A model generated the notes under the pieces. It searched no databases. It had not been told where the DNA came from and saw nothing but the letters and a program-made list of their open reading frames with translations. From Macrostomum lignano (Eukaryota), in assembly GCA_002269645.1 (NCBI GenBank), contig NIVC01000721.1:62001-126000 (forward strand): DNA of 64,000 nt. Reading direction: 5' to 3'. Made by a program: the position numbers and the translations under genes. Positions 830 to 49,254 of this stretch are shown here, piece by piece (positions within the stretch are counted from its first letter, which is position 1; every line of letters begins with the position of its first letter).

Positions 830-2582
830 GTAAGTCGAGTTAAATGAGACGCAGCTTATCAATACGAGAATGCGGAACCCTTCAGGCCGTTTCTCTGTTT
901 CAATCTGGCGCATCTGAACTTAAATTGTACACTTTTATGGCTCCACCGATTCCAACAGAAGACCGTCAAAGCCTGATCTAAAGCCAAAATCAATAACGGA
1001 TCATGCATTCTAGCTGCCGCTCAAATCATTGATAGCAATGGAGCATCCGCTTATAGTATTGTATTGATAGGCCGTGTCTATAGCAATACACGGCCCTAGC
1101 TTTACTATATCGAAACCAAAAGTGGTAAAGCGACATATATGGTAACTAACGACACAATATCTGACACAAATGCTTGCTAAAAATGCCTCACTTCAAGAAC
1201 CATATACAAGGCAGACGACGCTGTGCGACGAGAATGCACAGAGATGGCAATATCTGCTGTCAAGACAGCTCTCAAGCGAAGGCTAACAGAACCTGCTGTA
1301 ACAGAAAAAACTCCGGGAGCGGCCTACAGAGGGCGATTGGAATCATCGCTGCCCAGTCATTACATTGAACCCCCGTTGAAGTGGCACATCCATGCTCTAC
1401 AGTACGCATCGAGATGCACATTTGCACAAACTGACCAACAAATTTCGCTCACTTTTACGACAAGTTCGTTTCAGTCAACCAGTATTCGAACAGAAGAGTG
1501 AAAGGACTGCACTGTGTTGTACGAGCATACTGTGCACTTAGTCATGCTACAGGAAGCGGCAACAGATTTTGTGTAATGACTTTTTTAACCTTAGGTTTAA
1601 TCTTAAAACATTGCTAGCAATAGATCGTAAAGGCTATTACGTACTACATTATTTAATTCATTCGCCATTTTCCGTGCTGCAAACGCCAAAGCCCGAGTCA
1701 AGTGAATAGTAAGTTTTCTAGTCGCAGGTTGACAAAACTGTACATTATTAATACTCTACTCTTCCAGATAGTGGACTGCCATTACTGAACAAAAGCATCT
1801 TGTTGGAAGCGTGGAAGACAATCGAAACTGAATTGAAACAGGCAGTGCTGCAGGAGTCCGGACTCAATGTGGTTCGCATTGGTTAAGCAGCATGTATTCA
1901 AACTGCATACAGATTGTCCAGACTAACGATTCTTTTGTCTTAGATCAATTAACTATTTAAGTGCTATTTACTCGTAATTGGGCGATGGTTGATATGTTAA
2001 TTATACGAGTACCTGGCATGCTAAAACTTCACGCATAATTATCAAAGGTCTTTTAGGGGCTTGTTATTACCAAATATGTATACTATAGCTTATTTCACGG
2101 TGAATGACTACTATTTTCTGTTTATCCCGTTACGATGTGCAAATAAGGTCAATGGAGAAAAATACAGTGAGTCAAAAGTTAATAAAAATACAGCTCAGAA
2201 TTGTATCAAATTTCCGCCCATGTTTACTAGACTTCGACACTACTCTTAGTACAATGAACAGCTTTTTGTAGTTTTTTGAATTTTCGAGAAGCCGACAGAG
2301 TCAAGAGAGTACATACACAAATGACTACATGTGTAAAGTCAATAAGCGCCGAAAACAGAACTATTTGGCATGAATCGAGCCGGATACACACAGTTGCGGT
2401 CCCCTTTATTCCTGGCGATTTGCGTGATTACATTTATTAACAGGTGCTTCCTGATTACGGACGACACTCTGGAAAACAGTTTGCATCACCTTACAAGTCT
2501 ATATAATAACGCAGAAAATCGCACACCGAAAACCAACTCACACAGACCAACTGGCTCAAGCAAGCAACTTCCCAGGTACAAC

Positions 2583-4729
2583 ATGGACACCACGAAATCG
2601 CTCTGTCTGTGCGCATTTCTGGCCTTTGCATTGGCTATCCAAATTGGCAGGTGCAAACTGACCGAGCAGGAGAGAAACGATACGCTCAATTTTATCAACC
2701 ATTTAAGACGAAATGCTGTGCCACCGGCCGCCGACATGAATGGACTAGTGAGTGAAAAAACCACTTATTTTACTCAACAGTAGCTACATTGGCGTAGGAT
2801 TTATATGAAACTCATAAGAAGCTGCTGATTTTTAACATTATCACTAGATTTGGGACACCAGGCTGGAAAACTTGGCTCAGAGGGCGGCCAACAGTTGCGT
2901 ATTCGAGCACAACTACGGTGGCGATTATTCCTCCCTTGGCGAAATCCTGTACCTAGGCTCCAGGCAGAACTTCAGCGAGATTCTTGTCTTTATGTTTCTG
3001 GAGCGAGAGCAGTATAACTACACTAATGGCGCCTGCGTCACGGGCTCGGGCAAGTATCCGTTCTTTTCTACCTGCGGTCACTATCTGCAAATTGTAACTG
3101 CCGGTGTTAATAAGGTCGGCTGCGGCATACAATACTGCAGCGGGAACTACCTGGGCGTCTGCGAGTTTGACAGGTGCGTTTACTTTGCCGAAGTGCACTG
3201 ATGAGCGATTCCATACAATCACCGAGCCGTTTCTACTCGTGCATGTGTTAGTCAAGCAGTCAAGCATGCTACCAGTAGAAATGGCCAGGTGATTGCAAAG
3301 CATGATCCCGATGGTTTATTCTTCTCCCAAACCAACCAGGGAGTGGTACGTGCCTCCTTATCAAACCGGAGAAGCTGGAACAAAGTGTGGCAATGGCTAT
3401 GCGACCTACTTCAAGGACGGGCTCTGCTATTCCATTCTAGTAGGCGAAACGCCACCTATACCAGGGCCATTCGGTGAGAGACAGTGCTTAAAACATGTTT
3501 GTTTTATATCCAAGTAAACTTATCAAACAAACCCCATCCAAACGAACTGATTAAATTCCAGAGTGCAAGCTGAGCTGTCTAAACTATGGCACGCTGATGA
3601 CTTCGCCATTTTGCTCGTGTTCATGCCCAGCTGGTTACTACGGAGTCAGATGCGAAAGTGAGTGCGAAAGGAAAAGTAGACCAGTCATGAGAATGGATGC
3701 TTAAAGCACTATTAAAAGCTGAGTAACTAAGTAGCTAATCTACTTTCAGCAAAGAACATCTACTTCGCAAGCACCATTCCGAATGACTGCAAGGCACAGG
3801 CGGTGACCTGCAAGAATGGTGGCTCACCAACCATGACTGGCACAACCTGCAAGTGCGTCTGCCCAGCAAATTTCGAGGGAGAAAGTTGTCAGAGTAAGTA
3901 GCATGCAGTCTTCTCTATTCTAAAAGCACCAAGCCTTCCAGAAAGTGAACGCATCTTAAACCTTTTCAACTCCAATCTGCAGTTAACAAGGTACAGGAAA
4001 GCAACAGTTTGGCCATTTACTTTGGCGGCGAAATGCGATACTCAAGCTATTACCCGATTAAAATGTCAATCGTAAGTGCAAAAACACAGCTTTTTTCGAT
4101 ATAACAAGCCAGGAAATCAGCTGACAATTTTTTGTCTTTCAGTGGAATGACACATTGCTAAAGGAGTCAACCAGAACTCACCTGACAGATGCAATAAATA
4201 GCTACTGCAATGCCAACTTTTCCACTTGCTGTCCCAGCTCAACAGCCAGCTCGTTGCCAGCAACAATTCAACATTTTGCCACTTGCGAGGACTTCCACGT
4301 TGCTGATTCCTATCCGATTCAGGCCATTGATGGATCAATGAGGGTTGACGTTTACTATACTATGCAGCCAAGTGTGGACAATGTATGCAATGGTAAGACG
4401 TTTCTTGAAATAAATTCTTCCTTCCATTTATATAATTGTCTTTCGAAGAAGCAACCCTAGAACAAATTTTACAAGTAGTTCCCTTTGAGAAATAGCTCTC
4501 CAAATGCTCCATACAATGCTCTACTTTCTCACTGTTCTACGAGCTAGATGATATAAAGGGATCAATAAAAATCGATTACTAAAAACGATTATCTTTAACC
4601 TTTCCAATTGCAGGTAAAACCAACAGCTACGTCAGCAAGGCCATAATTAAGTCAGCCTGGACTACAGCAATGAAAAATATCAATGCAGCCATTTCTGCTA
4701 TTGGATTGAAGGCAATCAAAGCTGACTAA
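2583..4729 (+). CDS. Secreted CAP/SCP/PR-1 domain protein with two EGF-like repeats and a C-terminal domain of unknown type (8 inferred exons)
   Basis: Signal peptide MDTTKSLCLCAFLAFALAIQIGRC. CAP motifs INHLRR, IWDTRLENLAQRAANSCVFEH, CGHYLQIV, VGCGIQYC. EGF-like CLNYG..CSCSCPAGYYGVRCE and CKNGG..CKCVCPANFEGESCQ. Hand-inferred GT-AG exons: 2583-2747, 2848-3173, 3340-3473 (acceptor least certain), 3562-3657, 3750-3893, 3983-4071, 4143-4392, 4614-4729 (TAA). Confidence 0.85.
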
Positions 4730-7208
4730 GCCTAATGGAAAGTAAAAACTTACATTTCAATAAAACAATCAATGGACAATTAACCTTTGGTTTGTGGTTT
4801 TTACTCACTTGCACTTAACAACCAATTTGATTAAAAAAAAACACTCTAATAAACAAAACTTATGTAGCTTTAGCAATTAGCAAATGCTGTTTGCTTTTTA
4901 AATGTTGAATGATTTGTTGATTTGTTGATTTGAATGAATGTTATTATTATATATCTATTCACTAAAATTATTTCTAGGAAATTAAAGACAATAATAAAAA
5001 ATCATATATTCTGAATAATCTGATGTCAATTAAATGGTTTATGGATAGGCAAAAAAGTATGCTAGGGATAAAACTATACCTAAATCATATTTTGCTTCAA
5101 AATATATCCTATACCTAAACTCAAGTTTAGTTATTTCTTAAGATAAAAAAAGAAATTTAAATTTAAATTATAATGGAAAAGCTAGAACAATTTTAAAGAT
5201 GAAATTATTAATATACAAAAAAAGTTTTAAAAGCTAAAATAAAAAAATCTTTTTTCTGTTTTCATTAAAAAATACGGAAATATTGATTTCTAACTATGAA
5301 CATAAGAAATTAATGTATACCTATATATGCAATTATAGAGACAAGCATTCTAGAAACTTCTATACTCTCATTAAATGCCAGATTTGGCAATTTTTTAAAA
5401 AACTTTTTAATATATACTGTATCAAGTTTGTAAATAAATGCATATATCCCATAATAGCATAACTAAGACTCTTACTACTATTGCTCTGCTTTACTACTAT
5501 CACTATTACAATATTTAACTACATATATATTTCTCCTTGATGCTAAGCATTTCTTAAACTAAACAAAAAATTAAAAACATTGCTTTTTTAGTTTAAAGAA
5601 TTGTTGTTGCTATTAAGCCAACTGAATAATTCTAGTGGACTATTTAGTAAATTAAGTTTGATAACTATAGTATATAGCAGAAAAGTGGGGTATATCAAAA
5701 TATAGGCCTCCCCCTAACACTAGATATTTAGGAAAAGTAAACATTAGCCATTACCTATATTGCTTTTCATTATCTACCAAATAATATAGTATCTGCCAGA
5801 GTATTTGCAAAAATAAAGAACAAAACAAAAAAAATTAAAACCGAATATAAGACACAATACCTTGTATATTTTCAGTCTGGCCAAACCAAAAAAAACAAGC
5901 TAATATTGATAGTGGCCTACTAGTCTTTTTCTTTCATAATGGCTTGCTTGAATAAATTTTATTCCTTCACCTCCTAAGGGTTGAATAAAGAGATAATAAA
6001 AATTTGAAAAAAATAAAGGAAAATGAAAAACTCTTCCTGCTGCCTAAATTGTCCGCATATCATTTACCATTTAAGCTGAAAAAGATATTAGTGAAAAAGA
6101 TATTTAAAGAATGCACCTATAGTTAGCTATAAAGCTTACAGAAATTGGTATTATTTGCTGAAAGCGAGCAAGTACTGTTAATGGATTGCGCGCGAGCGAT
6201 CAACTGGTCGCCAATCCACAACGCGATTTCGCATGACGTGCATATGTGCATGATGGTCACGTCAAGTGCGAATCCCAAAATTTTAAATGTAAATAAAAAG
6301 AAAAACCATTTGCTAATTTTTCATAAATTTGACTTTAACTAATCTACTTTGATGACAAAAGAAGTTTTACAGCCTTTGATATATAAAGAAAAGTTTTACT
6401 TACGACAGGTTTTGTTAACTTGCACTTAATTGTAACTTTTTAAACTGCCTTGCTTACAAGAAATAGTTTTCGTTTTTACCAAAACTGCCTTTGCCTGCCA
6501 TGGATTGTTTATTGTAATTGTATTGTCATAATTAAAAGACATCAAAAAAAGAAGATATAAACTGAAAATATGTTGCAAAACTATACCTCAGCATAAAATT
6601 AAAAGTAGGATTAACTCTAAAAGCACTCTAAGAGCTGTCATATCTTTGTATCTTTGTGAAGGAATTCCTTCCTTCAATTGTCAATTTTAATGACAAATGA
6701 GTAATAGAGACACGAACTAAGTGTGAGTGGCTGTTTACGAAGTCTAGACAGACAGCACATCAGTTCAAACTTCGAATAGAATAGAAAAATAGGGGAACTG
6801 GCAGCAAAGGAAAGTGGGGTGGTGGAGCTGGCCAACAGCGGGGGTACATATGTACGTTGAAAGGGCTGACTGTACAGTGGAATCGGACTCTCTGAGAATG
6901 CATCAAATTATGATAAAATATTTTTTAATTCTGGTTCCTCAGCATCAAATATTCTGAGATATTCCAGAAATTTGTTGAGGGGAAAATTCTGGAGGGTAAA
7001 GACCCCAGGGGGGGGGTAGAGGGGGCGGCTCTGTATTGTGGCAAAAATACACTTGGTCCTCCCTTTGATTTTCTTCAGGTCTCCACCTAAGGGGGCAACC
7101 ACTCCCTACCCCCCTTCTGGGTGCACCCTGTGGCCTGTGGTCTTAGACTAAACACCTCATCTAGCCTTCAAGTAGAAAAAAGTTGCCCACCCTTGCTAGA
7201 TATATATC

Positions 7209-7336
7209 TAGCAACAGTCAAAAGTTCTATCCACCAAACAAATATATATCTATTCACCTCTTACCATGCATTTTAAATGAAAAGTTTCTTACTAACTATG
7301 CGTGATTTGTACATGTGGAACTTTTGACTATTGCTA
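7209..7336. mobile_element. Small MITE-like element with ~19-bp terminal inverted repeats
   Basis: tagcaacagtcaaaagttc (7209-7227) versus gaacttttgactattgcta (7318-7336): 18/19 complementary. Confidence 0.55.
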
Positions 7337-8424
7337 AGTATATCAAAGATTATCATACTATTACAACATGGTCATAATTCACAACAAAGCACATTTAAAT
7401 TATGTTGAAATATCTAATATAAGTTATGTTATATAAGTGATATTATGTAAATAGATAACCAGAAATAAAAACAAATCTACATAAAATCAGGCAATAAAAT
7501 GGCATATTGTAGTAGCCTGTCAGTCTATAATTGGTATTCCTGCATGTTTAACTACTAGCTTGCCTAGTTGGGGGTTGGGTATACTTAGTTAGCCAGCCAG
7601 ACCAACTGATCTAAGTTGGGTTTTTCACTGACTTTAAAGCCTTTATTTTGATTATGCAACACCTTGCCTTTTAACTATCTTGCTCTCTTTAAGTAAACCA
7701 ACTTACCATTTTAGCACTTACTCAATCTGGGATATGCTTACTATTTGAAGGATGCTTGCTAGCTGAGTGATACTTGCTATGTAAGGGATGCTTACTATTT
7801 GGAAGGATGCTTGCTGTCTAGGAGACACTTTCTTTTTAAGGGAAATGCCTGCTATCTTTGTGAAGGCTTTATTTTGTTGTGTCCTTTTGTTACTTTTAGA
7901 AAAAAAGAGATTCATAGCAAACATCTTTATCTGTGTCAATTTTACTTGAATAAGGTGATTTATTAAACCAAAGAAAGAAATTATTTTTAAGAAATTGTGT
8001 TTTTTAATGGATTTGTGTTAATCATTTTTGCTCTTTGCTTGGTTGCCCCAAATGTGGCACTAGATTGCTAGTCAATTATGTTCATTTCTCATTTGGCCTT
8101 GCCTAATATATGCGAGCTGTCAAAATATTAGATTTTATTTACCATGATGTATAGTTATATAGTTAACAAGACAGATTAGTAGGAGAATATTTGATGGAAA
8201 TAAAATAAAAAAATTTGAAAACTCAGACATGATTTGAAAATTTTAATAAATGATCAATTAATTTTATGGAATCTTATACTCGTAGACTTACAACTTTTAA
8301 ACTTTTTTTTTGAAAGGTCTATTGTGCATTATTGTTTCTCATGTAGAAAACAGTTTAAAAAGATTGCTTTATACTTTCAATACTTTTACTGATTTCAGAT
8401 GACATAATACCCAGTACTAATTCA

Positions 8425-11400
8425 ATGCCATCAAAAAATCGAAACATAGGAGTTGATTGTGGAAATTGTAGCAAACGTTTGCTCCCCGCAAAGTTTGTTT
8501 GCTTTTTCTGGAAAGCAAAGAATGAAGTATATATATCAGTGAAAAACCAATTCAAAGTAGCTGCAATGGCTAGTTTGTACATTGAAAAGGTAGGAGCAAA
8601 GGATGAAGTACGATGTCAATTTTGCAATGCCAGTGTTGGAGTTCAGCTGCCATTCGGACCGCATGGTTCGAATTATATCTCATTAGGAAAGAAAAAAGTC
8701 ATTGTTGGAGGGATTCAATGTGAGCCAAACGACAAAGTTTCCCAGAAATTGATACCACGGCTAAAGAAACAAATCGATGAGGTGAACATGGACACCTTCT
8801 ATGGCAGATCAATAGTCCCTGATTTCGGCAACTGGTCCAGTCTAATAGCTCGCCAAGTCCCAGTTCAGTTCGCTTCGCCCTCTGCTCCTGAGCACTTCGA
8901 CTGGTCCGACCTCCTTGTATCGGACAAAGTGCCACGGACCTACCAGCTGGAGGCTTTCGTTGAGGCACTTCAGCGAGATCTTGTACTGGTGCTGCCCACT
9001 GGCTCAGGCAAGACGCTGGTGGCAGCTCTGCTGCTGGCTCGGATGCGAGCTCTGAACCCGGGACGGATGGGGGCCCTGCTGGTGGAGCGAGTGCCGCTGG
9101 TGTTCCAGCAGGCCAAGGCGCTGGAGGCGGACACTGGGCTAAAAGTGGCCGCGCTGTGCGGAGAAATTATGACCTCTTGGAAAATTCGAGAACTTCTTGA
9201 TGGAGCGCATGATTTGGTAAGCAATCTTGTTATTTTTAACTATTTACCCAAGTCTCGTCTCTCTTAACAAAAAAGCTTTTCCGGATCGTTTTAGGTGGTG
9301 ATCACGGCAGGCGCCCTGCTCTCCCTAATTACTAATCGGCGAATTCCAGACTTGAGCGCGTTTTCATGCATTGTAATCGACGAGTGCCACCACGCGAGTT
9401 CCCCGCGGCACAACTTCCCGCGCGTCCTTAAGCTGAACCACCAACTGCCAGAGGATATGCGACCTCGTTTGCTAGGCTTGACTGCATCGCCTGTTGAACC
9501 TGGAGACGGCGATTCCGAAGGACAGAAGAAACTGCGTCGTCTTTTATCATTTTTTTCTCCTGATTGCGTTGCGTTCCGACCTGCAAAAGCAGAGGAGTCG
9601 GCCGTGCAAACAGTGACCAAGCTCTGTCATCCGTCCTCGCTGCAGATACAATTCGCTGAGGACCTTAGCAAACTTTTAACAGATAGCAACGAAAAACTGA
9701 ACCTTGGCCTACCGATCGGAGAGTCGATGCCTGTGCCAAGCAACCGGCTGCGCATGCTGGCTGGTCAGCTGCGCGGCTTCATCTATAGCGGCCTGCCACA
9801 ATTTCGAAACAACCGAGAAGAGATTCGCGACCTGCTGTGTCTCCTGGCCGCCATGGAAGCATCCCAACTTGTTGGCGTCTCAAAGGCAGCCCCTTTTCTC
9901 GACGACCTTCGCTGCATTTCCACAGCCACCATGCGATTTCGCTCTGATCCAAACTGGCAGCTGGATGTTTCTGAGCGCATGCGGGTGGTCGAAGCCGAGG
10001 CCGCATCGCTGTTGCAGGTCGAGAACAAAGAGTCTCGACTTCTCGTGCTGACGTGGACTCGCCGAACGGCCCGACTGCTGCACGCGCGCCTGTCCGAGCT
10101 CTTCCCGAACCTCAGGCCCCAGCTGGTCGTAGGACGTGGTGGCGCAGACGGCATGGACTGGGACGGCGAGCAGTCAGTGGCTATCGACAGCTTCAATGAC
10201 GGCAGCAGTCGTCTGATTGTGAGCACAGCAGTGCTGGAAGAGGGTCTCGACGTCAGCGCGTGCGACGTTGTTATCAGGTTCGATGCAGCCAAGTCGCTTG
10301 TGCAGCTGTTGCAGAGCCGCGGCCGGGCGCGCAAAAAGGACAGTCGGTTCTTGATGGTCGTCGATGAAAACGAAGCGGCCGCTGCAACTGATTTGAGCGA
10401 AAGAGAAAATATGCTGAACCGTGTGGTGGACGATCACTCGCTTGAAAACGGGGTTCCATCCGAGCTGACGCGGCAAATGGTAAAGCATTTGGCTGAACGA
10501 AAGAGCCCTGTGCAAGCTGCTCGATCTGTTGTAGCTCACTACTCAATGGGATTGACGGGCAAAATGGGAGGCCAGATAATGGTCCAGCTATGCTGCCCCG
10601 AGTTGCAGAGGAAAGACTGCGATAAAGAAGCTTTAATGCTAAGTATTGAGAAAGAAAACTTCGTTAAAGTTCGCTCCATCGATTTGCTATTTGATCAGTG
10701 TGAGAATCATTCTTTGCCTTCTGGGTTGTTTCCACGAGACTCAACAGTCGCTGCCGTGTACTTGGAAACGCACTCAACTTTAGATTCTCCTCTTGGCATT
10801 TATCCCGAATTCGCGCGTCGTTGGTCATTCGAACTGAACAATAAGCCAATTTATGCGATGCCAGACGTGCGAAAAGTGGAAGATTCGGACGATGATTCCA
10901 TTAAAAAATCCGAACGAACAGTTCAGGCTCTTAGTTCCGTTGCTATTGGCCAGTTTCAGACAAAAACTAAAGTAGTTGAGGCGTTGCATATTTCGGAAGA
11001 AAATATCGAATTAGAAATAGATTCTAATCGCAATCTCATTTCAGTATTTTTTCGTGCTGCTGGAGTTTCACTGGTAGTATCAAGCATTGGTGGAACTAAC
11101 GGGTTTGCAATGGTGGACTGGTCCAAAGAATTGATTGCTTTACCTTTGGCAGTAGCGCCAACTATTCTAAAAACTGTGGAACAGGAGGATCAGCAAAACG
11201 ACTGGGATTTCAATCCGATTTCTTCTGAAAGCTTTTGCAACACTGAAGATCTTTCAGGAAAAATTCGTCAGAAATTTGAAACCAATTCTGTACTCATCCT
11301 GCATCTACCAAGAGCCCCTCGATCAGCTGAGCCCCTCGACTGGATGAGACTCCGTGCGACGTTTCCTCTGCCGCTGCTCGATACCCGACTTGAGTCCGAA

Positions 11401-14400
11401 GAGTATGCCTCCCCAGGGGAAAGTGAGACGCTCTTCGAATACTGTCATAGAGTTAAGCCATTCCAGGAATTGTCCGTCCGTGACAAAGCAGAGTTCCAGT
11501 GCCGCTGGCAAATGCAGGCTCTGATTGACAGCCGTCGCTTCCTCATCACTCAAGAATCAGCTGCAGGTATTGAAAATAGAATCGCAGCAGCTGCACAAGC
11601 AGACTCTAAACTCGATAACGACTGCCCAACAAACCTCATTAAACTGGCCAACGCACTGTTGACGTTGTCGGCTACTGGGGATGGCGAAGCCTTCTTTGAA
11701 GATGTGCTTGGAGACCGGCTGAACTCTGCGCTTATTGTTCTCGAGGTGACCGATGAGGATGCGGAAGACGCTGCTGTCGGTCCGCCAGTTGCATGTGGCT
11801 CAGTGCTCGTGAAGCGAGCTGCTGTGACTCCAACAAGAGTGGTATTGTTCCCCGCCACTCCCGTAGCATCGAGTCGCCTTCTGCGTCGGATCCCTCCAGA
11901 AAGACTCGTGATGGTCGCCTTCACCGACGAGTCATGCGGAGTCGTGCGAGGCGGCGGCGTCAATGTTGCCTCTGCTGCTTCAGTCGGTGCTCGATTCACC
12001 AAAGTGCTGCGGGACGGTCTGACTCTGGCCGGACGGAGGTACCGGTTTTTTTCGGCAAGCAGCGGTCAGCTACGAACGAGCCGGTGCTTCTTTGTGGCCG
12101 CAGAGTCTGTCGAGGAAGTGCAGCGACTGCGAGACCAGCTGGTCGAGAATCCGACAGAGTTCCGATCGGTTTCCAAATATCTGTCTCGACTGGGACTTTT
12201 CATACAGCTGACACATGGGTAGCCAAATTAGAGACCAACCAAGTATCGAAATGTATTGACCATCGAGCTCTCAATGACGACCTTCTGACGGACGGTGAGT
12301 ATCAGTTCGTGCATGTATATGAGCTTTAATGTGCATTGTGCACAGCAAATTTTGACCTCGCAAAGCATTCGCACATTGCAGGAAGCGGGAAAATCAGCTC
12401 AGAACTCGCTATGTCAATTAAATCCAAACTGGACCTGCCAGAGCTACCGTTTGCCTTCCAATTTCGCTTTGGTGGAGCCAAAGGAGTCCTGACCACTGTC
12501 TCCGATAAGGACCCAAATCTAGGACTTCAGCAAGGAATCTTGCTGAGACCATCCACTGTGAAGTTCAAAAGCTCAGACACAAACTTGTGCATTGTCGGAA
12601 CGTCTCAGTGCGGTAGACTTTGCCTCAACAGAGAGATCATCACTCTGCTGGAGGCGCTGGCCTCCAAGTGTGACAGCTGGAACCCGTCGCAACGTCTGCG
12701 AAACATTCTCGACGCGGAACTGCGAAAAATAGCCGAGTCTCTAGCGACTCCTTCGGCAGCCACCGCGGCACTTCGAGAATTTATTGACAAACCGAGCTTG
12801 GCAACAGCGAGTGTTGTGGAAGCTGCGCGACACTTCAACTTTCTGACCGATCCGCACTGGCTCGGTCTGCTGCGATGCGTTTTCCGATTTCGGCTGTCCG
12901 ACCTGCAGAAGCGAGCTGCTCTGCCAGTGGGCGACCTCGGTTGTCGCGTAATGGGCGCACCTGATCCGCTAGAAGTGCTGGCTGAGGGCCAGGTGTTTCT
13001 TCGAATCAAGCGGAAACCCAGTGATCAGGCTAAGCAGATTGAGGGTCCAGTGCTGATATATCGAAACCCATGCCTGCATCCGGGAGACGTTCGAGTGGTG
13101 CAGGCCGTGGCCAAACCGCAGCTGTGTGGGTGGCTTAACCTGCTGCTGCTTCCTTCGCGCACTGACTGCCGCCGCTCACTGGCTGCCGATTGCAGCGGCG
13201 GTGACCTCGACGGAGACCAGTTTGGAGTTGTGTGGGACCCGGAGCTCGTGCCGCCTCTAGAGGCAGTCCACGAACCTCTGGACTATGCGAAGCTGGCATC
13301 AAACGAGCCACAGCTACCCGAAGGAGCTGACGTTACGAACCCAGTCTTGCTGGCCAACTTCTGCGCACAGAACTTTGCGAACAGCTTTCTTGGTCGAGTA
13401 GCGAATTTGCACCTGGCCATTTGTGATCAGCTGCCTGGTGGCGCCCTCAACCAGTTGGCGATCGAAGTTGCAAAGGCTCAATCGGTCGCAGTCGACTTTC
13501 CAAAGACAGGAATCGTACCGGAGGTGCCTGAAGCAGCAGTAAAATTCGTTAAAGAGAAAGGCTACCCAGACTTCATGGAGCGCTCTGATTCCTACCCTTC
13601 AGATAAGCTTCTGGGTCAGTTGTACCGAAGATGCCGCTCCTGCGACCTGGATTGGGATCTGCTGGACTCGATCGATCAAGAAAATCAACAGTACGAGTAC
13701 GATGTGACATGGGCCGGTCAGGAGAAGTTTTTGAAAAGCGCCAGTCGGCTGTTTGAGCTCTACCGCTCTGATCTGCGGGCACTGATGTCGCAGTGGGGCG
13801 CAAGAAGCGACAGGGAGCTGCAGCTCGGTCGCTGCTTTCAGTGGCACCCGCTGCTTCGAACAGATCGTGGTCGCGCTCACATAGCCATGCGGCAGGGGTT
13901 TGACGCTTTGGGCAACAAGTACCGGCGAATATTCGATCAACTTGCTGGGGACGACCAGAACAAACGCAGAGCTCAGGCAGCTGCATGGTTTGCAGTGGCG
14001 TACAAAAGTGTCGGGACCTCGAAGGCGAAGAAGCCACGAGGTTTAAGTTTCCCGTGGGTCGTGACCGACGTTTTGTGTGAAATTCGGTCTCACGGCATGT
14101 CGACCTCTGTACTGCAGACCGGCAGCGCGTCACTGCAGTCAATTGATGAAGGTCTCGAAGTGTCGATCGGTCGCTCGGTCTTTGCCTTCTTCCGCAAATC
14201 TCTTCCGGGTCTGCGCGATGCAGTCGGTCGTGCCGACGCAGCCGCCGCACTGGTCAGCGGTCGCCTGTCCAGCAGTGTGCAGGAGTGCTCAGTTGCAAGG
14301 TGTATGGCTCAGCCTCGATTCTTGTGTGTGATGAGGCTTCATCAGACATCGACTTGTGTGTGCTACCTCTTGATAAAGCGTACTCTGAGCCGTGGCTTCC

Positions 14401-17400
14401 CGCAGAGGTTTCTGTACTGGGAGAATGCGCTCGCCATCGTCATTGGCTCGAGACGCTTGTGTGGCCCTCACTGGATGCTGCAGTGTTGGAAAAGACTCGA
14501 TACCTCGATCGCCAAGTTCCGTTGATTCGATGCCGTCTTGGACTGGACGGCGGTGAGGACGTGGATGATGGCCAGGAGTGCGACATCAGTATGAACAGTG
14601 TAGGTCTGGGAAAGACGCGCTACCTTCTCAGCTTGTACAGTCGCTGTCCGTGGCGGCTACCTTTGCTGTGGCTGCTGGTTCAGTGGGCGAGGGCAGCTGG
14701 AATCGTTCGGTCATCAAGTGAGAGCCAGGGCTGATGCCTACAGCCGAGTTTTACGCTCTTGTTCTGCATTGCTTTTCTGAGTTCGACGAAGTCGCAAGCA
14801 ACTTCGAGGAAAGTAATAAATGTCTGCTTGATCTATCATTGTCTGAGCGCCTAGCTTTTTGATGGACCGGCTGACTGATAAAGCTTCGGATGCGAATTTT
14901 GCCTTTTTGGGCAGCTGCATACTACGTTTTGTTCGGTTTTGCAGTGAATTGTCCGGTGCCGTGACGTACAAGTGGCAAAGAGTTGAATCCGCTTCATCGG
15001 TTCAGATTTCGGCTGAGGTCGTTAGAGGCGTGGCGGAACTTGCGGACGTTGCCTCTCGCGTTCTCGTCTACACCCACAGCGCAGCGTCCATTGTGTCTTC
15101 CGCCGCAATTATTTCAAGTCTCTCTGGAAAAGCCATTCGGCTGACACAGCGTTTGCCCGGAATTTTAAGCACTGAAATGTTGCGATCCCTTCGCTTTCAC
15201 GAGACACGTTTGCGCTTGACTACCGGATGTGATTCTGTACAACTGGAAGAGACCACAGGATCGCGCCGACTTCTGATACGGGCAATCGGAGCCCCGTCAG
15301 CTATCGATCGCCTTCGACATGAACTCCGCGAACTGTCTGCTAGATTTGGCTTGTCTGGCAGCTGGACGAGGAAGTACAACAACGGTTTGCGCTACTTTTT
15401 GGAGGGAGGTGGAACCGTCATGGCCACTCGATGTCTTTCAAACAGTTGTCGGATCGAGCTAATTGATCACCTTGGCTCAGTGAATGTTGAGCATCAAATG
15501 CATGATGTTTGCGTTCCGCTGTGTCTCGGGACGGATGGTATTGATTTTACATCATGGACAGATGAAGCCGCGCGTCGCTTATTCGCTCTGATGTGTCGCC
15601 AGTTTTCTCGCCTGCGATCATCCAGGTCTGAATGCCAAGTTTCTGCAATGCTAAAAGACCTGGAACTTTCAGTTCGCGTTGGCCGAGTTTATTTCCTAAA
15701 CGCAACTAACGGTCTTCCTGACAACCGCCGTAGCATATCTCTAGCTGAGCTGGCAGTAGCACTGGCGGCCGGTAAGAAGTTCCGCAAGGGTTGCGAGCGA
15801 CCCGACTTTCGTCGCCGCGATGCCTCCGATGCCACTAGAAAGCATCGCGCAGAGAAAATGGTTAGTCTTGCGGCTCCTGGCGGCGCATCTCAAGAGCCTC
15901 ATCCGCCGCTTAAACCGGAACGGGCTCCGAAGCCAAACCGTCGAAAGAAATACAAACTAGGCGTTGGCTTTCTAGCTGGAATTGTTGCGGATCTGCATCG
16001 AATTAGCACCGGAGCAACCGTAGAAGTCTACGAGAAGGCCCTGAAATCATTAGGCTATGTAGAAATTCCTAAACAGACAGAGCCGGCTCTGACCGGCTGG
16101 AAGGTGTCCGTGCGCTTGAGCGCTTCCTATCAGGCTCACCTGCAGCATGATCTTTCATTGCAGCTAGTGCGAGTCTACGAGCGACCGCTGAATTGTATTT
16201 ACATGAATGTGCTAGACTCTGATAGGCCTGGCGAGAGAAACTCAGCGATTACAGCCTCCAGCACAGCTGACTGTGAAACTGGAAGTCCAAGTGAAGCCAT
16301 CGGATTGGAAAATGCGCCGAGTGAAAAATCGAACTCGCACAAACAGAAAAAGAATAGAAAATTCAAACGCAAGCGCAAAGGCGATAAAAAAGATGGAGAT
16401 GAGTATTATCTCGCTGGTGCGGAACAATCTGCTCGGGATGCAACTCAATCTTTGGACAGAAGAGACGATTTCATTGAAACTCAGGGAGCCGCTGAAACAC
16501 AAACGGTCAGCTCAGGCTTAACAGAGCAGAGGCAGAGCACCAATGTGATGGATGACAGCGCCTGTAGCAATTTAGCAGGCAAACAAGGTAAGACACAAAT
16601 GAAGTCAAAAGGCGTTGTTGCAACCGCTGGAATCATGGAAACTACTTGCGAACAGCGCAAATGTCCAGAAATCGATTGGAGTATACTAAAACATCGAACA
16701 TCAAGAAAGAAAATTGGTGCATGCATTAAAGTCAAAAGCGGAACTGAAAATCTTACAAATGTCAGCACAACCGACGGTGCAACCTCCTCTGAAGTTTTCA
16801 CCGAGGTCGCAACTGGTTGCAGCACTAGCAACGAAGGCTCGTCAGCTAAGACCAACCAGAGGGGTCAAAGAGGTCAAGAACGCGGCCCAAAAGCAGCTGG
16901 CGTAGTGGAAGCTAAAATAGATACGGAAAGTGTGGAATCCTTGGCAGAATCCAAAAGCGACGCGGAACGCTCAGGTGCAGCAGTGAACGTTTTTTCGAAT
17001 GAGAAGAAATCCAATAAAAACTTCACTTTGATGACTCCTGAAAGTGAATTCTCAGCAACAAGCAGACAGAGTGTCGGTGGTGAAGTGGTAGATGCCGCAG
17101 CTGCAATGCCTCCCAGCGAGTTGACTAAGAAAGATGGCAGACGCCAAAGAAAAGCAGCGTCGAACAACAAATCTTCAAGCAGTGTCGATCAGAGACAAAA
17201 GTGCGCCAATGAAGCCGAATTCTGCGGACGACCGAGCACAGTTGATGCCAGCGGCAGAGCTGCAGCTGCCGGCTACCTGGAGCAGCTGGACTTGCACATT
17301 AACCTGGCCGCGTGCGAACCAGTCCGCCCGAGCATGCACCGGGAACTTTTCCCAGACGGTGAAGAGTTTCCCTATCTGGTCCGAGATCCAACCACTGGCA

Positions 17401-17741
17401 AAGTAGTGATCAGCGACCGGGTGCCAAAGTCGCTGACTGTCCTGGTGACGCGTCAGCGGTCGGTTGTTCGTCAATTTCGCCGTTCGAGCAGCGACGCCGA
17501 AGATGTTTGGCCGGAGTTGCGCATCATCAGCGGCTCGCTGCACTTTGGCGGCGACCAAAATCTCGAGGCGCAGCCGGTGTGCGATTTGTCGATGCACTTT
17601 GACCCAGCGCCGCTGCTGACGGCGGCACAGTACGGTCGGTATGGCAACCTCAGCGGCTACTGCAGACGCCTGATGCAGCTCAGCTTGGAACTGACTAGTG
17701 CGCTCAAGGAGCAAATCCGGCTGGCTGCTGGTGATGGTTAG
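8425..17741 (+). CDS. Large fusion protein (~3,050 aa reconstructed): Zn-binding module + Dicer/RIG-I-like DExH helicase + cellular RNA-dependent RNA polymerase + Cid1/TUTase-like nucleotidyltransferase + unassigned C-terminal region
   Basis: Exons 8425-9216, 9295-12294 and 12382-17741. Intron 9217-9294 (gtaagc..ttttag) joins GAHDL|VVITAG; intron 12295-12381 (gtgagt..ttgcag) rebuilds the RdRP motif LTDG|SGKISSELA. Four -1 frameshifts (~12199, ~14283, ~14730, ~14860) must be corrected for a continuous frame. Confidence 0.85.
8930..10350 (+). other. SF2 DExH helicase domain of Dicer/RIG-I-like type (within the fusion gene)
   Basis: Q motif PRTYQLEA; Walker A LPTGSGKT (8995); Ia VERVPLVFQQ; II VIDECHHA (9379); III LGLTASP; V STAVLEEGLDVSACDVVIRFD; VI QSRGRAR (10312). 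No RNase III, PAZ or CARD motifs were seen. Confidence 0.93.
11810..13950 (+). other. Cellular (QDE-1/RDR/EGO-1-type) RdRP catalytic domain (within the fusion gene)
   Basis: VKRAAVTPTRV, RRYRFFSASSGQLR, SRLGLF, LTDGSGKIS, FQFRFGGAKGVL, YRNPCLHPGDVR, catalytic SGGDLDGDQFGVVWD (DLDGD at 13203-13217), QSVAVDFPKTG, YPDFMER, SDKLLGQLYR. Confidence 0.96.
14285..14960 (+). other. Pol-beta-family terminal nucleotidyltransferase, Cid1/GLD-2/TUT-like (within the fusion gene)
   Basis: KVYGSASILVCDEASSDIDLCV matches G[GS]x9-13DxD (Asp codons at 14345 and 14351). It is followed by VPLIRC, the third Asp in ECDISMNSVGLGKTRYLLSLY (14582), LWLLVQWAR and GLMPTAEFYALVLHC, the motif order seen in Cid1/TUT4/7. 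Confidence 0.85.
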
Positions 17742-19799: not shown

Positions 19800-21870
19800 C
19801 CTGGGACTTGGCTTACTTGACTTAGCTGCAGGGGGCGTCCGGCGGATGCCGCTAGGAGGCGGAAGCCCCTGGCAACCAATGACTTCCATCGAAGCGATGT
19901 CGCTCAGAGGGACCCGTCGGTCTCGCCTGCAGCGCGGTCCTCCTCACCGGCGGTGGGAAGAAGTCAGCTCGTCCCGTGTCCCTGAGGTACCGGGCGAGCA
20001 GCGGGATGCTCTCGGGCCTGCAAACGTCGGAGAGAACCGGGTTTGGCCCCGGGTGAGTGAGCCTGGCCCTGGTGAAACCGGGCAGTGGCAGATAAAGTGC
20101 TCGGCGTTTTCACTGCCTGAGCGGCAGAAGGGGCACCGCTCCTCGGGTACCTGGCCCTGAAGGAAGCGGTGGCGAGAGAAACAGTCATGTCTGGAGAGGG
20201 CCATGCTAACTGCTCTGAGGTCTCTGCGGTTGAGCCTGAGGAGAGCTCACGCAAGAGAGGAGAGGGGCAGGGGACGGCAGCACAGGATTGCCTACAATTC
20301 CGGGTGTCGCGCCACCTGCGGCGGTGCTCGGAATCAGCCCAGTGCTTAACATGGGAAATGATCACCGAGGTGGGGATGAAGGCCCCTGGGCCCGGCCCCA
20401 GCAGCGCGCCGGCGGAGCCAGCCTTAGCCAGCAGGTCAGCGCGCTCGCTGCCGAGGAAACCAGCGTGGCCCGGGATCCATCTGAGCTCCACCTGGTTGCC
20501 TAGCGCAAGCCCATTGAGCTGGACATTGCAGTCCTGCAGGACAGATCTGGAGCTGGTGGTGCTGTGGCAGAGGGCCCGAAGGGCTGCTTGGCTGTCAGAG
20601 TGAAAAATAAACTTCCGACCGCTGAGCTGCCTTCGGCGCAGCTCTGCCGCGCAGGAGCTGATGGCAAGCACCTCGGTCTGAAAAAACACTGGAGTTGAGT
20701 CCAGTGTGCTGGGAGTAGCTCCACACTACTTCTCCCTTGAAGAAGACGCAAGCTCCGAAGCCTGAAAGACCATGCCGAATAGTGACCTTATACCAGGTAC
20801 CTTTGGCTCAGGAGAAGGGTGGCTGGGATCGAGTCCGTGAGGATGTTGAGCCCGCCACACTCCTCGAGAGCCTTGAGGCAGAGGTCAGAGTGCGGGATAA
20901 GCGACCGCTTCTTAAAGGCCCGCACTTTCTTGAAAGCCACGCCAGCATCTAGAAGACGCCGGGTGCTCTTCGCCGCCTCTCCTTTGATATAAATATCCAG
21001 AGGAATGCATTCATGCCTTCAAAAGGGATGAGGGTGGAGCGCCCATAGTCATGCGGCAGGCTCTGCCCTGGATTTTGTAGAGAGCGTCGAGGTTGCTCTT
21101 GACGCTCAGGCCGCTGGCCCATACGAGGCTGGCGTAACTGATCGAGGGCGGATAATGGCTGTGTAAATCCAGCACAGCTTCCTGGGGGTGAGCCCCCAGG
21201 TGGTGCCCACGGCGCGCCTGATTTGAGCCAGGACAACCAGGGCTTTTTGGCTTTAGTTTGAATGTGCGGAGTCCAGTTTAACCTGTGGTCCAGAGTGAGA
21301 CCCAGGCAGCGGACCTGCTTCTCCATGGTATTATGCTTTCCATAGAGGGTGAGTGGGTTCATGGTCCAGAGCAGTTTGTTGGTAAAAATGACCGCTGTGG
21401 TTTTCGACTCTGAGAGTCTAAGGCCAGATTGGCTTGCCCAACGCTCCGCTCGTCTCAGAAAGCCCTGCAGAAGGTCTCTGGTGGTATCAACCGAGGGGCC
21501 CGCGCACATCGCGGTCACATCATCGGCATAGCCTTTATGTGACCTTGAGAATGGGGTCATGGAGATCACTGCAAAGCAACTCATCCATGACCATGTTCTA
21601 AAGAACGGGGTGAGAACCCCGCCCTGGGGGCCCCCCTGGACAGCAGGACAGGCGCCGTAAGAGAGCTGCCGTTCAGGTGGGCCACGACAGTGCGGTTCCG
21701 GATCATGAACATGATCCACCAGACAAGGTGAGGGTGCATGGCCCTGGATTCCAGGGCTCTGCAAAAGGCCTCGAAAATGACATTGTCGCCGCCTGGGACA
21801 GCACCTAACGGCATCATGTCTGGCGTATGGCTTGCATGAGTTTAGAATTCGACTCATCGATATGTTGATT
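19800..21870 (-). mobile_element. 5'-truncated, frameshifted non-LTR retrotransposon with RT, RNase H and C-terminal zinc finger (I/R1/LOA-like group)
   Basis: RT motifs PQGGVLTP, YADD and LGLTLDHRLNWTPHI. RNase H FHSDSQAAL..LRWIPGHAGFLGSERADLLAK. C-terminal CPFC..EHFICHCP. Split over several frames. Confidence 0.9.
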
Positions 21871-26847: not shown

Positions 26848-29800
26848 TGTTATGACTTCTTCTCTAGCGGAAGACAGTGAGTCAAGATCAACAAAGTCAA
26901 CTTAAAAGTTGCACTCTTAGCAGAGCGTCTTATTTCATGTTCGTAACCTTCTTTTTTTATTTCCAAGCTTGAAGCATCGCTTCTTTAGCTTATGGCTGGG
27001 TGTGTGTGCGACTGAGTCGTCTATGGCCACACCCAACATCTCCCCCCTTACAATGGCAAAGAAAGTTTTTTTTTTAAAGTTAATGCGGGAGGAACAAATT
27101 TTAGCACTTATAGTTAACTTTGGGTTTCTCCGAAAGTCGCATGCTTCTCCTGGGTTCAATAGTACCCTCGGGAACCTCAGGGATCGGAGGTGTACGCAGA
27201 TCCTTTTGTTGTGGAGGCTCCTCTTCTTGTTTTCTCCCTGCCGCGTGCTCGCCAGCTCCGGGTGGCATTCTGTCGGTTTCTGCGGGCTCCTCGCCGGTTA
27301 GACTGTACGGATGTAGCTGATCCAAGTGAACCTTCCGATACTTTGAGTTCGGTTCATCTGTCTTGATCATGGCCATGCTCCTTCCAATAGGCAAAAGCAG
27401 TTTTGCAGTGATTGGCTTGTCTCTCTCATTTTTGTAGATAACTGGATCCTCCAGTCCAACTTGCCTCTTGGTAAACGGAACCCTGAGCTTGTGCCCCAGC
27501 AGCTGTTCTGCTGGTGACGATCCCGCTTTGTTGTCTGATGCGCGATAAAACAGCAAGAAGCGGTCAACAGACTCTTGACTGAAGCCATTTGCCTTGATGC
27601 TTTCTTTTAGCGTGCGTACGAAACGCTCTGCAACCCCATTACTTTGTGGGTGATAAGCTGCGATAGTTAGGTACTCACAGTCAATTCCTGCCAACCACTC
27701 TGTAAAGTCCTTGCTGATAAAGCATGGTCCGTTATCTGACACAAGTGTCCTTGGAATTCCAAGCTGAGAAAACGTCCTTCTGACGCACTGAATGACAGTT
27801 CGAGAAGTCATATCTTTGGTGACGTGGACTTCAGGATACCCGCTGTACGAATCTACCAGAACGAGCATGTAGTGGTTGTCGATCGGTCCTGCAAAGTCGA
27901 TATGAACACGATCCCAAGGACCCGCAGCTTCAGGCCAACTGGAGCGAAAATTTCTATTTTGCGGTTTTGCGGTCCTACAGATCTGGCACAAACCGACTGT
28001 CCGTTCGATATCGCTGTCCATGGCTGGCCACCAAAACTCCGCGCGAGCCAAGGACTTGGTGCGGGACATTCCCAAATGAACTTCGTGCACTGCTGCAATC
28101 GCTTTCATGCGTAAGGATTTTGGAATAATGATCCTGTGGCCTCGAAGAATAACATCGTCCTGAACGCAAAGTTCTTCTCGCACATTTTTGAAAGGTCGCA
28201 GTCTAGGGTGTTTGAAGCTTCCTGTCTTTATAGCGCTCTTCAGCAAGCGCATTTCGTTACACCGCTTCGTTGCTAGCCTGATTTCTTCCAGAGACACTGT
28301 AGTTGAAACCGTGTGAATGTTACCAATCTCTAGCGTTTCACCGCTTCTTCCTTGCGGAACCAATCTTGAGAGCGCGTCAGATGCCATAGCTTTAGATTTT
28401 CGATACTCGATCTCGTAATCGTACGCCGTGAGAAATATCGCCCATCTCTGCAGCCTTGCGGACACTCTCGATGGTAGCTCTTTGTCACAGGCTAAGATGT
28501 AAACGAGAGGTCGATGGTCGGTTATTAGCTTAAATTTTCTGTCACAGAGAAAACGATGACATCTTCTAACACCCCATATTATCGCAAGCGCTTCTCGCTC
28601 TATTTGCGAATAATTTCGCTCCGATGATGACAAAAGTTTGCTGATGTACAAGACAGGACGTCCTTGCTGACTCAGGACACCACCAAGGGCAATCTGCGAA
28701 GCGTCTACTTCGAGCTCAACCGGTAGCTTTGGGTCGTACGCATGCAAAGCAGCGTCTTCTGAAAGTGATTTCTGGATGTTTCTGAACGCATCTTGTTCTT
28801 TTGTGCCCCAACGAAACTCCACACCTTTGCGCTTCAGGTGCACCAACGGAGCCGATATTCCAGAAAGGTTTGGAATGAATCACGAGCAGAACGTAATCAG
28901 TCCGAGGAAGGATTCTAACTCGGAAAGATTCTTTGGAGTTTCCATTTCTTTGATCGCCCGCACTTTCTCTCCATCAGGATAAATGCGACCGCTGTCCAGA
29001 ATATGACCCAAAAACCGGACTCGAGATAAGTTCCGTTGGCATTTCTGATCATTTACCTTTAGCCCTTCCGATGCTAGACGGTAAAGTACTTGTTCTTCGC
29101 GTCCTTTCAACTCTGACTCATCGCTTCCACCAATTAATATATCGTCCATGTACGCTATTGTTCCGGGAATACCTTGGATCACTTGCGATATATACCGTTG
29201 GAAAATACTCGGAGCCGTTTTTATTCCAAACACAAGTTTATTGTACTTAAAATTTCCAAATTGTGTCGACATCACGGTTAGCGGTTTAGATGCATCGTCC
29301 AGCTCTACTTGGTTGTACGCTTTCTCTAGATCGATGATACTGTACCGAAAGCATCCCGCCACTGTCGAGAACGCTTCCTCCGGGGTCGGTGTCGGGTAGC
29401 TATCCGGGACCAGCTGTTGATTAAGCGTACTCTTATAGTCCACACATAGCCTGATACTGCCGTTGGGCTTGCCGACTACCACGACTGGAGACGCCCATTC
29501 CGAGAATTTCACAGCTTCGATTATACCTTCATCAAGTAAGCGATCCAATTCCTTTTTTACTGCTTCACGTTGAGCAAATGGTAACGGTCTTGCTTTTACA
29601 TACTTTGGTACTGCTCCGTCTTTAAGTTCCAAATGAGCTTTCATTGTAGTTGCACTTGCTGCCAGAGATGCCATATCCATGGAGACGTCCCCATTATGTC
29701 CTGTGTCCAGCTGTACACAGAGAACATCTCGCCCCAGCAAGGCATAGCTCTTGCTGCCTTTCACTACCTCAAAGTCGATGCGCTGATATTTTCCATTCAG

Positions 29801-34889: not shown

Positions 34890-35274
34890 ACCAGAATACA
34901 TAAGTATGGCTTTGTTCGTGCCGCCATTACAGAAGACGGGCTTTGTGTAGATATTTTTTCGTCAGCTTGTTAATTTTTGTATACCAGACTTGATTTAATG
35001 GCAAACCCATAATTAGAGCTTGGTCTAGTAATATTTTAACCAAGCTTAATCTACTTGCACAACAGATGATGATTGGTTGGAGACAAATGTACATGTAGGT
35101 GTTGGTCAATTACAATCACTTACAGCTAATATTTAGTAACACAGCAACTCATTTTGATAATAAAAAATTACGGAAAGACAAAGACAAATGTGGTGAACTT
35201 GTGCTCTTTTGAGCACTAGCTACACTGTGCGTCACCACCGCTTACTTTAAATGTGAAGGGGTTGGGGCCTGGAA

Positions 35275-45726: not shown

Positions 45727-45794
45727 GGAGTGCGAGCATGTGTTTTGTATTTAACTGGACTTGCTGGTGGCTACGTGAAGTGAGCATTGGTGGC

Positions 45795-49199: not shown

Positions 49200-49254
49200 T
49201 GCTGAAATTGACCGAATGCCAATAAAACTGTTAGATAAAACGTTTGACGATGAT

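Follow-up and report, generated by a model that had tools for sequence, protein, structure and literature searches.

We analyzed 64,000 nucleotides of the Macrostomum lignano genome (assembly GCA_002269645.1, contig NIVC01000721.1, positions 62,001 to 126,000 of the forward strand); this whole stretch is called the window below, and all coordinates refer to it. On its forward strand lies a gene for a single chain of about 3000 residues, in which a zinc beta-tent module is followed by a DECH helicase of the type found in Dicer and the RIG-I-like receptors (RLRs), a eukaryotic RNA-dependent RNA polymerase (RdRP), a poly(A)-polymerase-like nucleotidyltransferase and a tail. The subject of this article is the N-terminal module, residues 1-132. 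Its predicted fold, its homology signal and its position at the start of the chain mark it as a conserved zinc beta-tent akin to the C-terminal domains (CTDs) of the RLR and DRH proteins, and we consider it reasonably probable that it heads a single-chain RdRP complex in which, by analogy with those domains, it would have a role at RNA ends. The module is laid out as follows (AF2, AlphaFold2; pLDDT, predicted local distance difference test).

8425..8820, + strand: N-terminal zinc beta-tent module, residues 1-132, predicted from the open reading frame, homologues, AF2, Foldseek and HHalign
8458..8469, + strand: first predicted zinc knuckle, CGNC (Cys12, Cys15), with the Cys residues in 21/22 aligned sequences
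8614..8625, + strand: second predicted zinc knuckle, CQFC (Cys64, Cys67); behind it come Gly72, which is invariant, and PFGP (residues 76-79)
8737..8742, + strand: Lys104-Val105, at the position of the [KR]-W motif of the family; the Trp is lost in the flatworm copy
8821..8901, + strand: linker between module and helicase, modeled with low confidence (AF2 pLDDT <50 at residues 128-142)

The module and helicase motif I are encoded in one open reading frame (ORF; 8425-9267, + strand), which opens with MPSKNRNIGVDCGNCSKRLL, has its start codon at 8425-8427 and is preceded by an in-frame stop at 8356-8358. The public M. lignano gene model begins at the same Met and includes the module, and residues 1-170 are identical to UniRef100_A0A1I8HJL9, a Macrostomum lignano entry named "RNA-dependent RNA polymerase." A polypyrimidine-AG (tgatttcag) at 8393-8398, 27 nt 5' of the start codon, is a possible cis- or trans-splice acceptor for the 5' untranslated region; M. 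lignano uses spliced-leader trans-splicing. When the first 360 nt were shuffled (n = 200,000), two CxxC pairs 40-60 residues apart arose in 0.066% of the cases and the frame stayed open in 0.005%, and the probability of a frame open over 132 codons by chance in such AT-rich DNA is about 5e-5 to 9e-5. A chance extension of the ORF into AT-rich upstream DNA was ruled out by these shuffles together with the conservation described below.

The original prediction, made from the letters alone, had proposed two CxxC pairs about 50 residues apart in front of the helicase, and both are present, at Cys12/Cys15 and Cys64/Cys67, with a spacing of 52 residues. The second pair was said to follow the pattern C-x-x-C-x-x-x-[LV]-G, into which the actual C-Q-F-C-N-A-S-V-G fits, and the stretch YISLGKKKVIV (residues 84-94, 8674-8706), described as beta-strand-like, contains strands at 83-87 and 92-94 in the AF2 model. 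The boundaries had to be widened: positions 8450-8720 correspond to residues 9-99 and capture the core of the domain, and the whole module is longer, spanning residues 1-132 (8425-8820).

The remainder of the gene was traced with Pfam, which recognized DEAD/ResIII, Helicase_C and the eukaryotic RdRP, and with tblastn searches using full-length homologues, to which the window gene is collinear from 8452 to past 16220. Exon 1 (8425-9216) carries the module uninterrupted into helicase motif I, after which the following features succeed one another.

8902..9216, + strand: first part of Hel1, with motif I PTGSGKT at 8995-9015 (residue 191); Pfam DEAD/ResIII, Dicer/RLR helicases in PDB
9217..9294, + strand: intron 1 (gtaagc...ttttag, 78 nt), the junction giving ...GAHDL/VVITAGAL... 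as in the homologues
9295..10497, + strand: rest of the helicase, with DECHH at 9379-9393, a Hel2i-like insertion at residues ~379-504, QSRGRARK at 10312-10335 in Hel2 and pincer-like helices at residues 622-665; Pfam, AF2, PDB
11824..13631, + strand: eukaryotic RdRP domain PF05183, with DLDGD at 13203-13217; Pfam E 3.9e-91, tblastn
14285..14734, + strand: Pol-beta-type nucleotidyltransferase, similar to poly(A) polymerases and terminal uridylyltransferases (PAP/TUTase-like), with G-S at 14306-14311 in GSASILV and DIDLCV at 14345-14362; tblastn to the MTPAP-like region
14859..17741, + strand: C-terminal region with a long low-complexity insert; no Pfam match, first third collinear with the homologues

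As judged from sequence and modeled structure, the helicase belongs to the Dicer/RLR clade of duplex-RNA-activated superfamily 2 (SF2) helicases. Its sequence matches in PDB are the ancestral Dicer helicase (2.5e-39), DCL1, LGP2 (1e-29, in one stretch over the whole core) and RIG-I. For residues 1-700, AF2 (pLDDT 79.5) models Hel1, a helical insertion, Hel2 and two long helices; in Foldseek this model comes closest to MDA5, RIG-I, the ancestral Dicer helicase, LGP2, DRH-1 and Dicer-2. Likewise, a profile of module plus helicase retrieves family fragments, then one Dicer-like protein and then mostly RLRs with PF11648. Further along the chain, the RdRP with its D-x-D-G-D motif is attached to a Pol-beta nucleotidyltransferase with G-S and D-x-D, a region in which the full-length homologues carry the MTPAP-like_central domain. 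The tail behind the nucleotidyltransferase is conserved across the family and has no Pfam match; the insert in the window copy is rich in Ser, Lys and Glu.

The homologues came from an exhaustive phmmer search with residues 1-170 against 1.84 billion cluster representatives, which found 22 other proteins, all of them matching at their extreme N-terminus. In the 22-sequence alignment C64, C67, G72 and P79 are invariant, and C12, C15, F27, L37, E42, P76, G78 and V92 are nearly so, C12 and C15 being present in 21 of 22 sequences with a fragment lacking that stretch as the exception. This conservation is, at the level of sequence, the decisive evidence that the two-CxxC module is more than chance. 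Searches with the window module alone gave no convincing Pfam match (noise from Rad60-SLD, YABBY_N, BIR and others, E >=0.04), only noise in a phmmer search of PDB, and no match in a word-indexed homologue search, to which the module profile added short fragments only.

The full-length members have 2364-2737 residues and consist of the module, DEAD/ResIII, Helicase_C, RdRP, the MTPAP-like nucleotidyltransferase and a tail of about 650 residues. This four-part architecture also occurs in dinoflagellates and on marine eukaryote contigs. The dinoflagellate sources are Effrenium voratum and Prorocentrum cordatum/Polarella glacialis. Shorter sequences (220-919 residues) with module and helicase come from Rhodomonas salina, a cryptophyte, and from two chrysophytes, Chromulina nebulosa and Ochromonadaceae sp. 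CCMP2298, and one MMETSP transcript is likewise a member. One member is a single intronless ORF of 7.7 kb on a contig of 1.18 Mb, where it adjoins a Hydin gene, and the transcript-derived proteins P0155 and P0159 have module and helicase on one chain. Absence of the segment from the mRNA had been named as an outcome that would speak against the module; in M. lignano it is contiguous with the helicase ORF and part of the public protein model, and in other species transcript-derived proteins carry it.

The fold of the module was modeled with confidence: the AF2 prediction for residues 1-132, with the alignment as input and the window protein as target, has a pLDDT of 91.4 and a predicted template modeling (TM) score, pTM, of 0.83. 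The model shows the saddle-shaped, two-sheet beta-tent of the RLR/DRH CTDs, with a four-cysteine (C4) site built from two knuckles about 50 residues apart, for which zinc binding is predicted from the conservation of the Cys residues. In a Foldseek search of PDB, ranks 1-14 are all RLR/DRH C-terminal domains, from DRH-3, MDA5, LGP2 and DRH-1 (E 4.6e-5 to 1e-3, TM 0.47-0.58), led by the DRH-3 CTD with 5'-ppp RNA (6m6s, E 4.6e-5) and including LGP2 (2w4r, TM 0.57/0.60); RIG-I CTDs enter the list from rank 18. The resemblance to the fold of the RIG-I CTD, Yippee, Mis18 and cereblon that had been proposed for this segment is thus borne out, with the RLR/DRH CTDs as the best matches, followed by CULT, Yippee and MsrB. 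Two outcomes that had been set against this proposal, a best match to an unrelated zinc finger and the lack of any predicted fold, were looked at and neither occurred: BIR, RING and zinc-ribbon folds were ruled out, none of them being in the Foldseek list.

The lower part of this list bears on the idea that the module binds a small ligand or acts as an enzyme, in the manner of the cereblon CULT domain with its aromatic cage or of MsrB, an idea that we regard as very improbable. Bacterial cereblon (E 1e-3, query TM 0.37-0.42) and MsrB (E 6e-3) are indeed among the Foldseek matches, and the only match in the viral structure library is a giant-virus MsrB. Furthermore, the best E-values of the family profile against PDB belong to SelR/MsrB (0.07-0.28), and they stem from C-x-x-C-x-x-x-[VIL]-G-x-x-x-P-F-G-P aligned with ...LGHVFpDGP. 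However, the MsrB alignments span only about 25 residues around the second knuckle, and the query TM-scores for CULT and MsrB (0.34-0.45) lie below those for the RLR/DRH CTDs. The conserved columns, compared with what is known of those families, contain neither the Trp triad of CULT nor the His-x-x-His or C-terminal catalytic Cys of MsrB; the sole conserved Trp, W105, is outside the position of the CULT cage, as read from the columns and not from a superposition. The fusion partners, moreover, all act on RNA.

Sequence comparisons place the module within the same superfamily and, at greater depth, next to the RLR CTDs. The family profile matched only beta-tent proteins in PDB (SelR/MsrB, YPEL5, Mis18 and LGP2, E 0.07-1.2). 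In Pfam, RIG-I_C-RD (PF11648) matches 12 of the 22 members (best 22.5 bits, E 1.4e-4) and Yippee-Mis18 (PF03226) matches 18 (best 24.0 bits, E 2e-5), the latter without any member reaching its threshold of 26.6 bits over the whole domain. The RIG-I_C-RD alignments run from end to end (e.g., 2-108 against 2-110 of 117), whereas those with Yippee-Mis18 end at the second knuckle (about 4-71 of 108 in the profile). With P0010, the most RLR-like member, as the only query, a PDB search returned glyoxalase matches, which we rejected as spurious.

For a more sensitive comparison we used a hidden Markov model (HMM) of 106 strictly C-terminal, canonical RLR CTDs, seeded with human LGP2 (identical to 2rqa, 2w4r and 3eqt). 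The family modules score up to 24.9 bits against it over their full length. An earlier version with 107 sequences had included P0045, a protein discussed below; it reported none of 560 shuffled sequences, and the rebuild with 106 sequences gave the same results. HHalign aligned the family profile with the RLR-CTD profile at 89.4% (E 2e-6, 98 columns), for which the deep RLR-CTD profile was needed, as the alignment with the LGP2 sequence alone reached only 18.6%. The register brings together both knuckles, an H-L/H-V strand, K-P-E-F with T/N-P-x-F, the Lys-rich loop before the second knuckle, and the [KR]-W motif with the Trp of KWK. In most members the loop before the second knuckle is rich in Lys and Arg (up to 8 of 12 residues), W is present in the [KR]-W motif of 18 of 20 family sequences, 41 residues after the third Cys, and the net charge of the modules ranges from +1 to +11. 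The CTDs of DRH-3 and RIG-I use the corresponding loop and the KWK motif for contacts to the 5'-triphosphate and the backbone of the RNA (PMC8464030). Profile comparison and modeled structure together show that the nearest known relatives of the module are the RNA-end-binding CTDs of the RLR and DRH proteins.

A beta-tent need not read RNA ends, and we also weighed the possibility that the module serves protein contacts or self-association, as in the oligomerization of Mis18 and the docking of YPEL5 on the CTLH E3 ligase, or that it regulates the helicase or RdRP of its own chain, much as a repressor domain would. We consider this main alternative unlikely, though far from negligible. It would agree with Yippee-Mis18 being the Pfam family that matches most members, with the presence of YPEL5 and Mis18 among the profile matches in PDB, and with a flatworm copy that has lost the KW Trp and other conserved surface residues yet keeps its fold, as a scaffold might. 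DRH-3 is reported to dimerize obligately, and the CTD of RIG-I doubles as a repressor domain, both of which we count in its favor as well. On the other hand, the Yippee-Mis18 alignments are limited to the zinc half while those with the RLR CTDs are complete, the structural match to YPEL5 is weaker (TM 0.43, E 4e-3), the modules are strongly basic, and the Lys-rich loop and the KW motif stand at the positions of the RNA contacts in the RLRs. We therefore return to the reading of the module as a relative of the RLR/DRH CTDs.

The domain order had been described as a CTD placed before the helicase, and the data agree with this: residues 1-132 precede a helicase of the Dicer/RLR clade. Within the family proteins the CTD profile matches the N-terminus alone and nothing after the helicase, so that a second canonical CTD behind the window helicase, which we sought with the same profile, was not found; conversely, the matches of the family profile on RLRs are confined to their C-terminal CTD. 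The word "permuted" presupposes common descent with a domain swap and has to be taken with reserve, as independent recruitment of a beta-tent is also possible. M. lignano has canonical RLR-like helicases of about 1000 residues as well (P0107 and P0142; BOX15_Mlig021912g1 and BOX15_Mlig016200g2). In the alignment, the C-terminal PF11648 domain of P0142 looks atypical around the second knuckle (CDSCGFKV, no Trp-Gly).

The Tara Oceans scaffold TARA_SAMEA6048536_METAG-scaffold_402 carries the architecture at 1527-13029. Its protein P0045 has an N-terminal domain that is labeled RIG-I_C-RD by Pfam, if weakly, and that scores 27.9 bits against the clean RLR-CTD profile. On the same strand after this domain follow DEAD/ResIII, Helicase_C, RdRP and the MTPAP-like domain, split into several gene calls. 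P0045 represents another branch, closer to the RLRs, in which the domains come in the same order.

Several observations weigh against the proposed kinship and RNA-end role. No member reaches the gathering score of RIG-I_C-RD (25.6 bits), the window module itself matches neither RIG-I_C-RD nor Yippee-Mis18, and sequence by itself places the family at about the same distance from Yippee-Mis18. The Foldseek TM-scores against the RLR/DRH CTDs are moderate (0.5-0.6). The flatworm copy has furthermore lost E42, W105, R120, H36 and P41: relative to the family consensus it has H36->Y, P41->N, E42->Q (E in 20 of 22), W105->V and R120->V (R in 17 of 19), and it is also off consensus at A86 and F87. It thus has K104-V105 where the RLR CTDs have their KWK motif. 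Its loop before the second knuckle, YIEKVGAKDEVR, is basic at 3 of 12 positions, the equivalence of the loops resting on the HMM alignment. In base composition, the module DNA (8425-8820) has a GC content of 0.39 and 0.36 at third codon positions (GC3), against about 0.56-0.60 and 0.62-0.64 in the helicase part (8902-10497), a sharp break within one ORF, and the low GC3 may reflect relaxed constraint on the module in the flatworm lineage. It is in just this low-GC stretch that the protein strays from near-invariant residues of the family. Finally, there are four apparent 1-bp frameshifts in the assembled gene, the intactness of which is not demonstrable from the window alone.

These frame changes lead from frame 1 to 3 at ~12201, 3 to 2 at ~14280, 2 to 1 at ~14730 and 1 to 3 at ~14858. 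Each corresponds to one missing base, and at least two are located at T runs. The RdRP domain is broken by the first of them and by an intron at 12296-12345; at ~12201 the segments RLGLF/HTADTW have one base in common, and there the public M. lignano protein is continuous (...RLGLFHTADTW...). To us the four changes look like long-read assembly errors rather than the decay of a pseudogene.

The same data have to be considered under the assumption that the segment is non-functional in the flatworm, either as a decaying or untranslated 5' extension of an ORF with its start downstream, or as part of a pseudogene locus. The low GC3 next to a helicase of ordinary composition, the departures from near-invariant residues, which are unique to the flatworm copy, and the four frame changes would all fit such a situation. 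Nevertheless, an AT-rich stretch of 132 codons has kept its frame free of stops. The sequence retains the hydrophobic core together with the four Cys, G72 and PFGP, and it is modeled with a fold at pLDDT 91. The public gene model assigns the start to the Met of the module, and the frame changes, all of them single-base deletions and one of them read through in the public protein, have the pattern of long-read assembly errors. All catalytic motifs are intact as well (DECHH, QSRGRARK, DLDGD and G-S...DIDLCV). We hold a non-functional segment to be improbable and continue with a functional, RLR/DRH-like module. The flatworm copy has a net charge of +11 and, according to the model, retains the zinc site and the fold. 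Several family-wide conserved residues that align with RNA contacts of the RLR CTDs have diverged, and the RNA-end specificity may therefore be weakened or altered.

In comparison with the RLR and DRH proteins, the family shares the two-sheet saddle and the predicted C4 zinc site, and its Lys-rich loop and [KR]-W are in register with the K858-K861 loop and the KWK motif of RIG-I (PMC8464030). In both groups the domain is attached to a DECH helicase of the Dicer/RLR clade with a Hel2i-like insertion and pincer-like helices. However, the CTD of the RLR/DRH proteins is C-terminal and connected via the pincer, whereas the family module is N-terminal and joined by a disordered linker to the helicase, before motif I (residue 191). 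The family also has its own P-F-G-P-x-G motif after the second knuckle, no caspase recruitment domains (CARDs), and a chain that continues into the RdRP and the nucleotidyltransferase. It is found in protists, whereas RIG-I was detectable only in animals in the survey that described the zinc beta-tent families of Yippee, Mis18, CULT and MsrB (Lupas et al., 2015; PMC4287342). With these latter families the module shares the superfamily fold, the pattern C-x-x-C...C-x-x-C-x-x-x-[LIV]-G and sub-threshold HMM matches in both directions, but the likeness is confined to the zinc half, the structural scores are lower, and the family is not a small stand-alone protein.

Helicase, RdRP and nucleotidyltransferase activities are also combined in the multi-subunit RNA-directed RNA polymerase complexes (RDRCs): Rdp1 with the Hrr1 helicase and the Cid12 nucleotidyltransferase in S. 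pombe, Rdr1 with Rdn1/2 in Tetrahymena, and RRF-1/EGO-1 with DRH-3 in C. elegans. The family differs from these in having the activities on one polypeptide, with the CTD-like domain first. In Dictyostelium, RrpA/B/C have a Dicer-like helicase fused upstream of a eukaryotic RdRP; we know of no nucleotidyltransferase and no N-terminal beta-tent in these proteins. They are not among the matches of the module search, which might miss very divergent copies. In C. elegans the helicase partner of the RdRP is the RLR-type DRH-3, the CTD of which prefers 5'-ppp RNA (PMC8464030).

The DRH-3 system also suggests how the single chain could work. The DRH-3 CTD binds 5'-ppp RNA, the mark of RdRP products, via its Lys loop and KWK motif, and DRH-3 binds RdRPs and is thought to aid their movement along the template (PMC8464030). 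By analogy, the basic beta-tent of the family might bind an RNA terminus or duplex end, most likely the 5'-triphosphate of the nascent RdRP product paired to its template. Positioned in this way, the tethered helicase could load onto the template-product duplex and spend ATP on moving or recycling the RdRP along it, so that ATP-driven movement would be coupled to RNA synthesis and to 3' tailing by the nucleotidyltransferase.

The gene is flanked by remnants of mobile elements (19964-21857, - strand; 27101-30691, - strand; 38056-39445, + strand), of the following types: non-long-terminal-repeat-type reverse transcriptase (RT)/RNase H; Ty3/gypsy-type pol with protease, RT, RNase H and integrase; and a Crypton-like tyrosine-recombinase element with a QRICH1-like domain, DUF3504 and Phage_integrase. 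Dense minisatellites with periods of 19-34 nt and 174 nt and up to 47 copies fill 34340-53284 (e.g., 42223-43360 and 52408-53284), and they account for the strong GC/AT skews and long spurious ORFs of this region. An ORF with a CBF/Mak21 domain (Noc-type ribosome biogenesis) at 44123-45726 on the - strand is the only ordinary cellular gene that we recognized near the RdRP gene.

The fold family was known before, as were the RLR-type helicase, the RdRP and a functional connection of RLR-type helicases with RdRPs. New are the covalent joining of the parts, the inverted domain order and the presence outside animals. Our search of the literature found no description of an N-terminal CTD-like domain, of the four-part single-chain architecture, or of a close RLR-CTD relative outside animals, though they may still have been described. 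The original prediction had seen in this gene a possible link between RLR-type sensing and the amplification of RNA interference (RNAi). A link of RLR-type helicases to RdRP amplification was already known from DRH-3 in C. elegans (PMC8464030).

It is tempting to speculate about the direction of evolution. One hypothesis, which we put forward tentatively and ourselves find rather doubtful, is that the pairing of a Dicer/RLR-type helicase with an RNA-end-binding beta-tent of the RLR-CTD type is an older eukaryotic invention that arose for RNAi amplification and not for antiviral signaling in animals. It would have appeared first within a helicase, RdRP and nucleotidyltransferase joined in one chain, an enzyme still present in dinoflagellates, cryptophytes, chrysophytes and one flatworm lineage. 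The animal RLRs and DRH proteins would descend from such an ancestor, having lost the polymerase modules while the beta-tent moved to the C-terminal end.

The CTDs of the RLRs are the textbook example of domains that read viral RNA ends, and they have been regarded as confined to animals (PMC4287342), and a relative is now seen in several protist lineages and a flatworm. The origin of the RLRs, from the RNAi machinery or as a new combination in animals, thereby becomes testable. The family also offers a single-polypeptide model of an RDRC, in which the coupling of RNA-end recognition, helicase translocation, RNA synthesis and tailing can be studied. Among the flatworm genomes surveyed, RdRPs were reported from M. 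lignano alone (Fontenla et al., 2017; PMC5594548), and our findings show that the M. lignano RdRP is a member of a protist-type megaprotein family and not a nematode-like enzyme.

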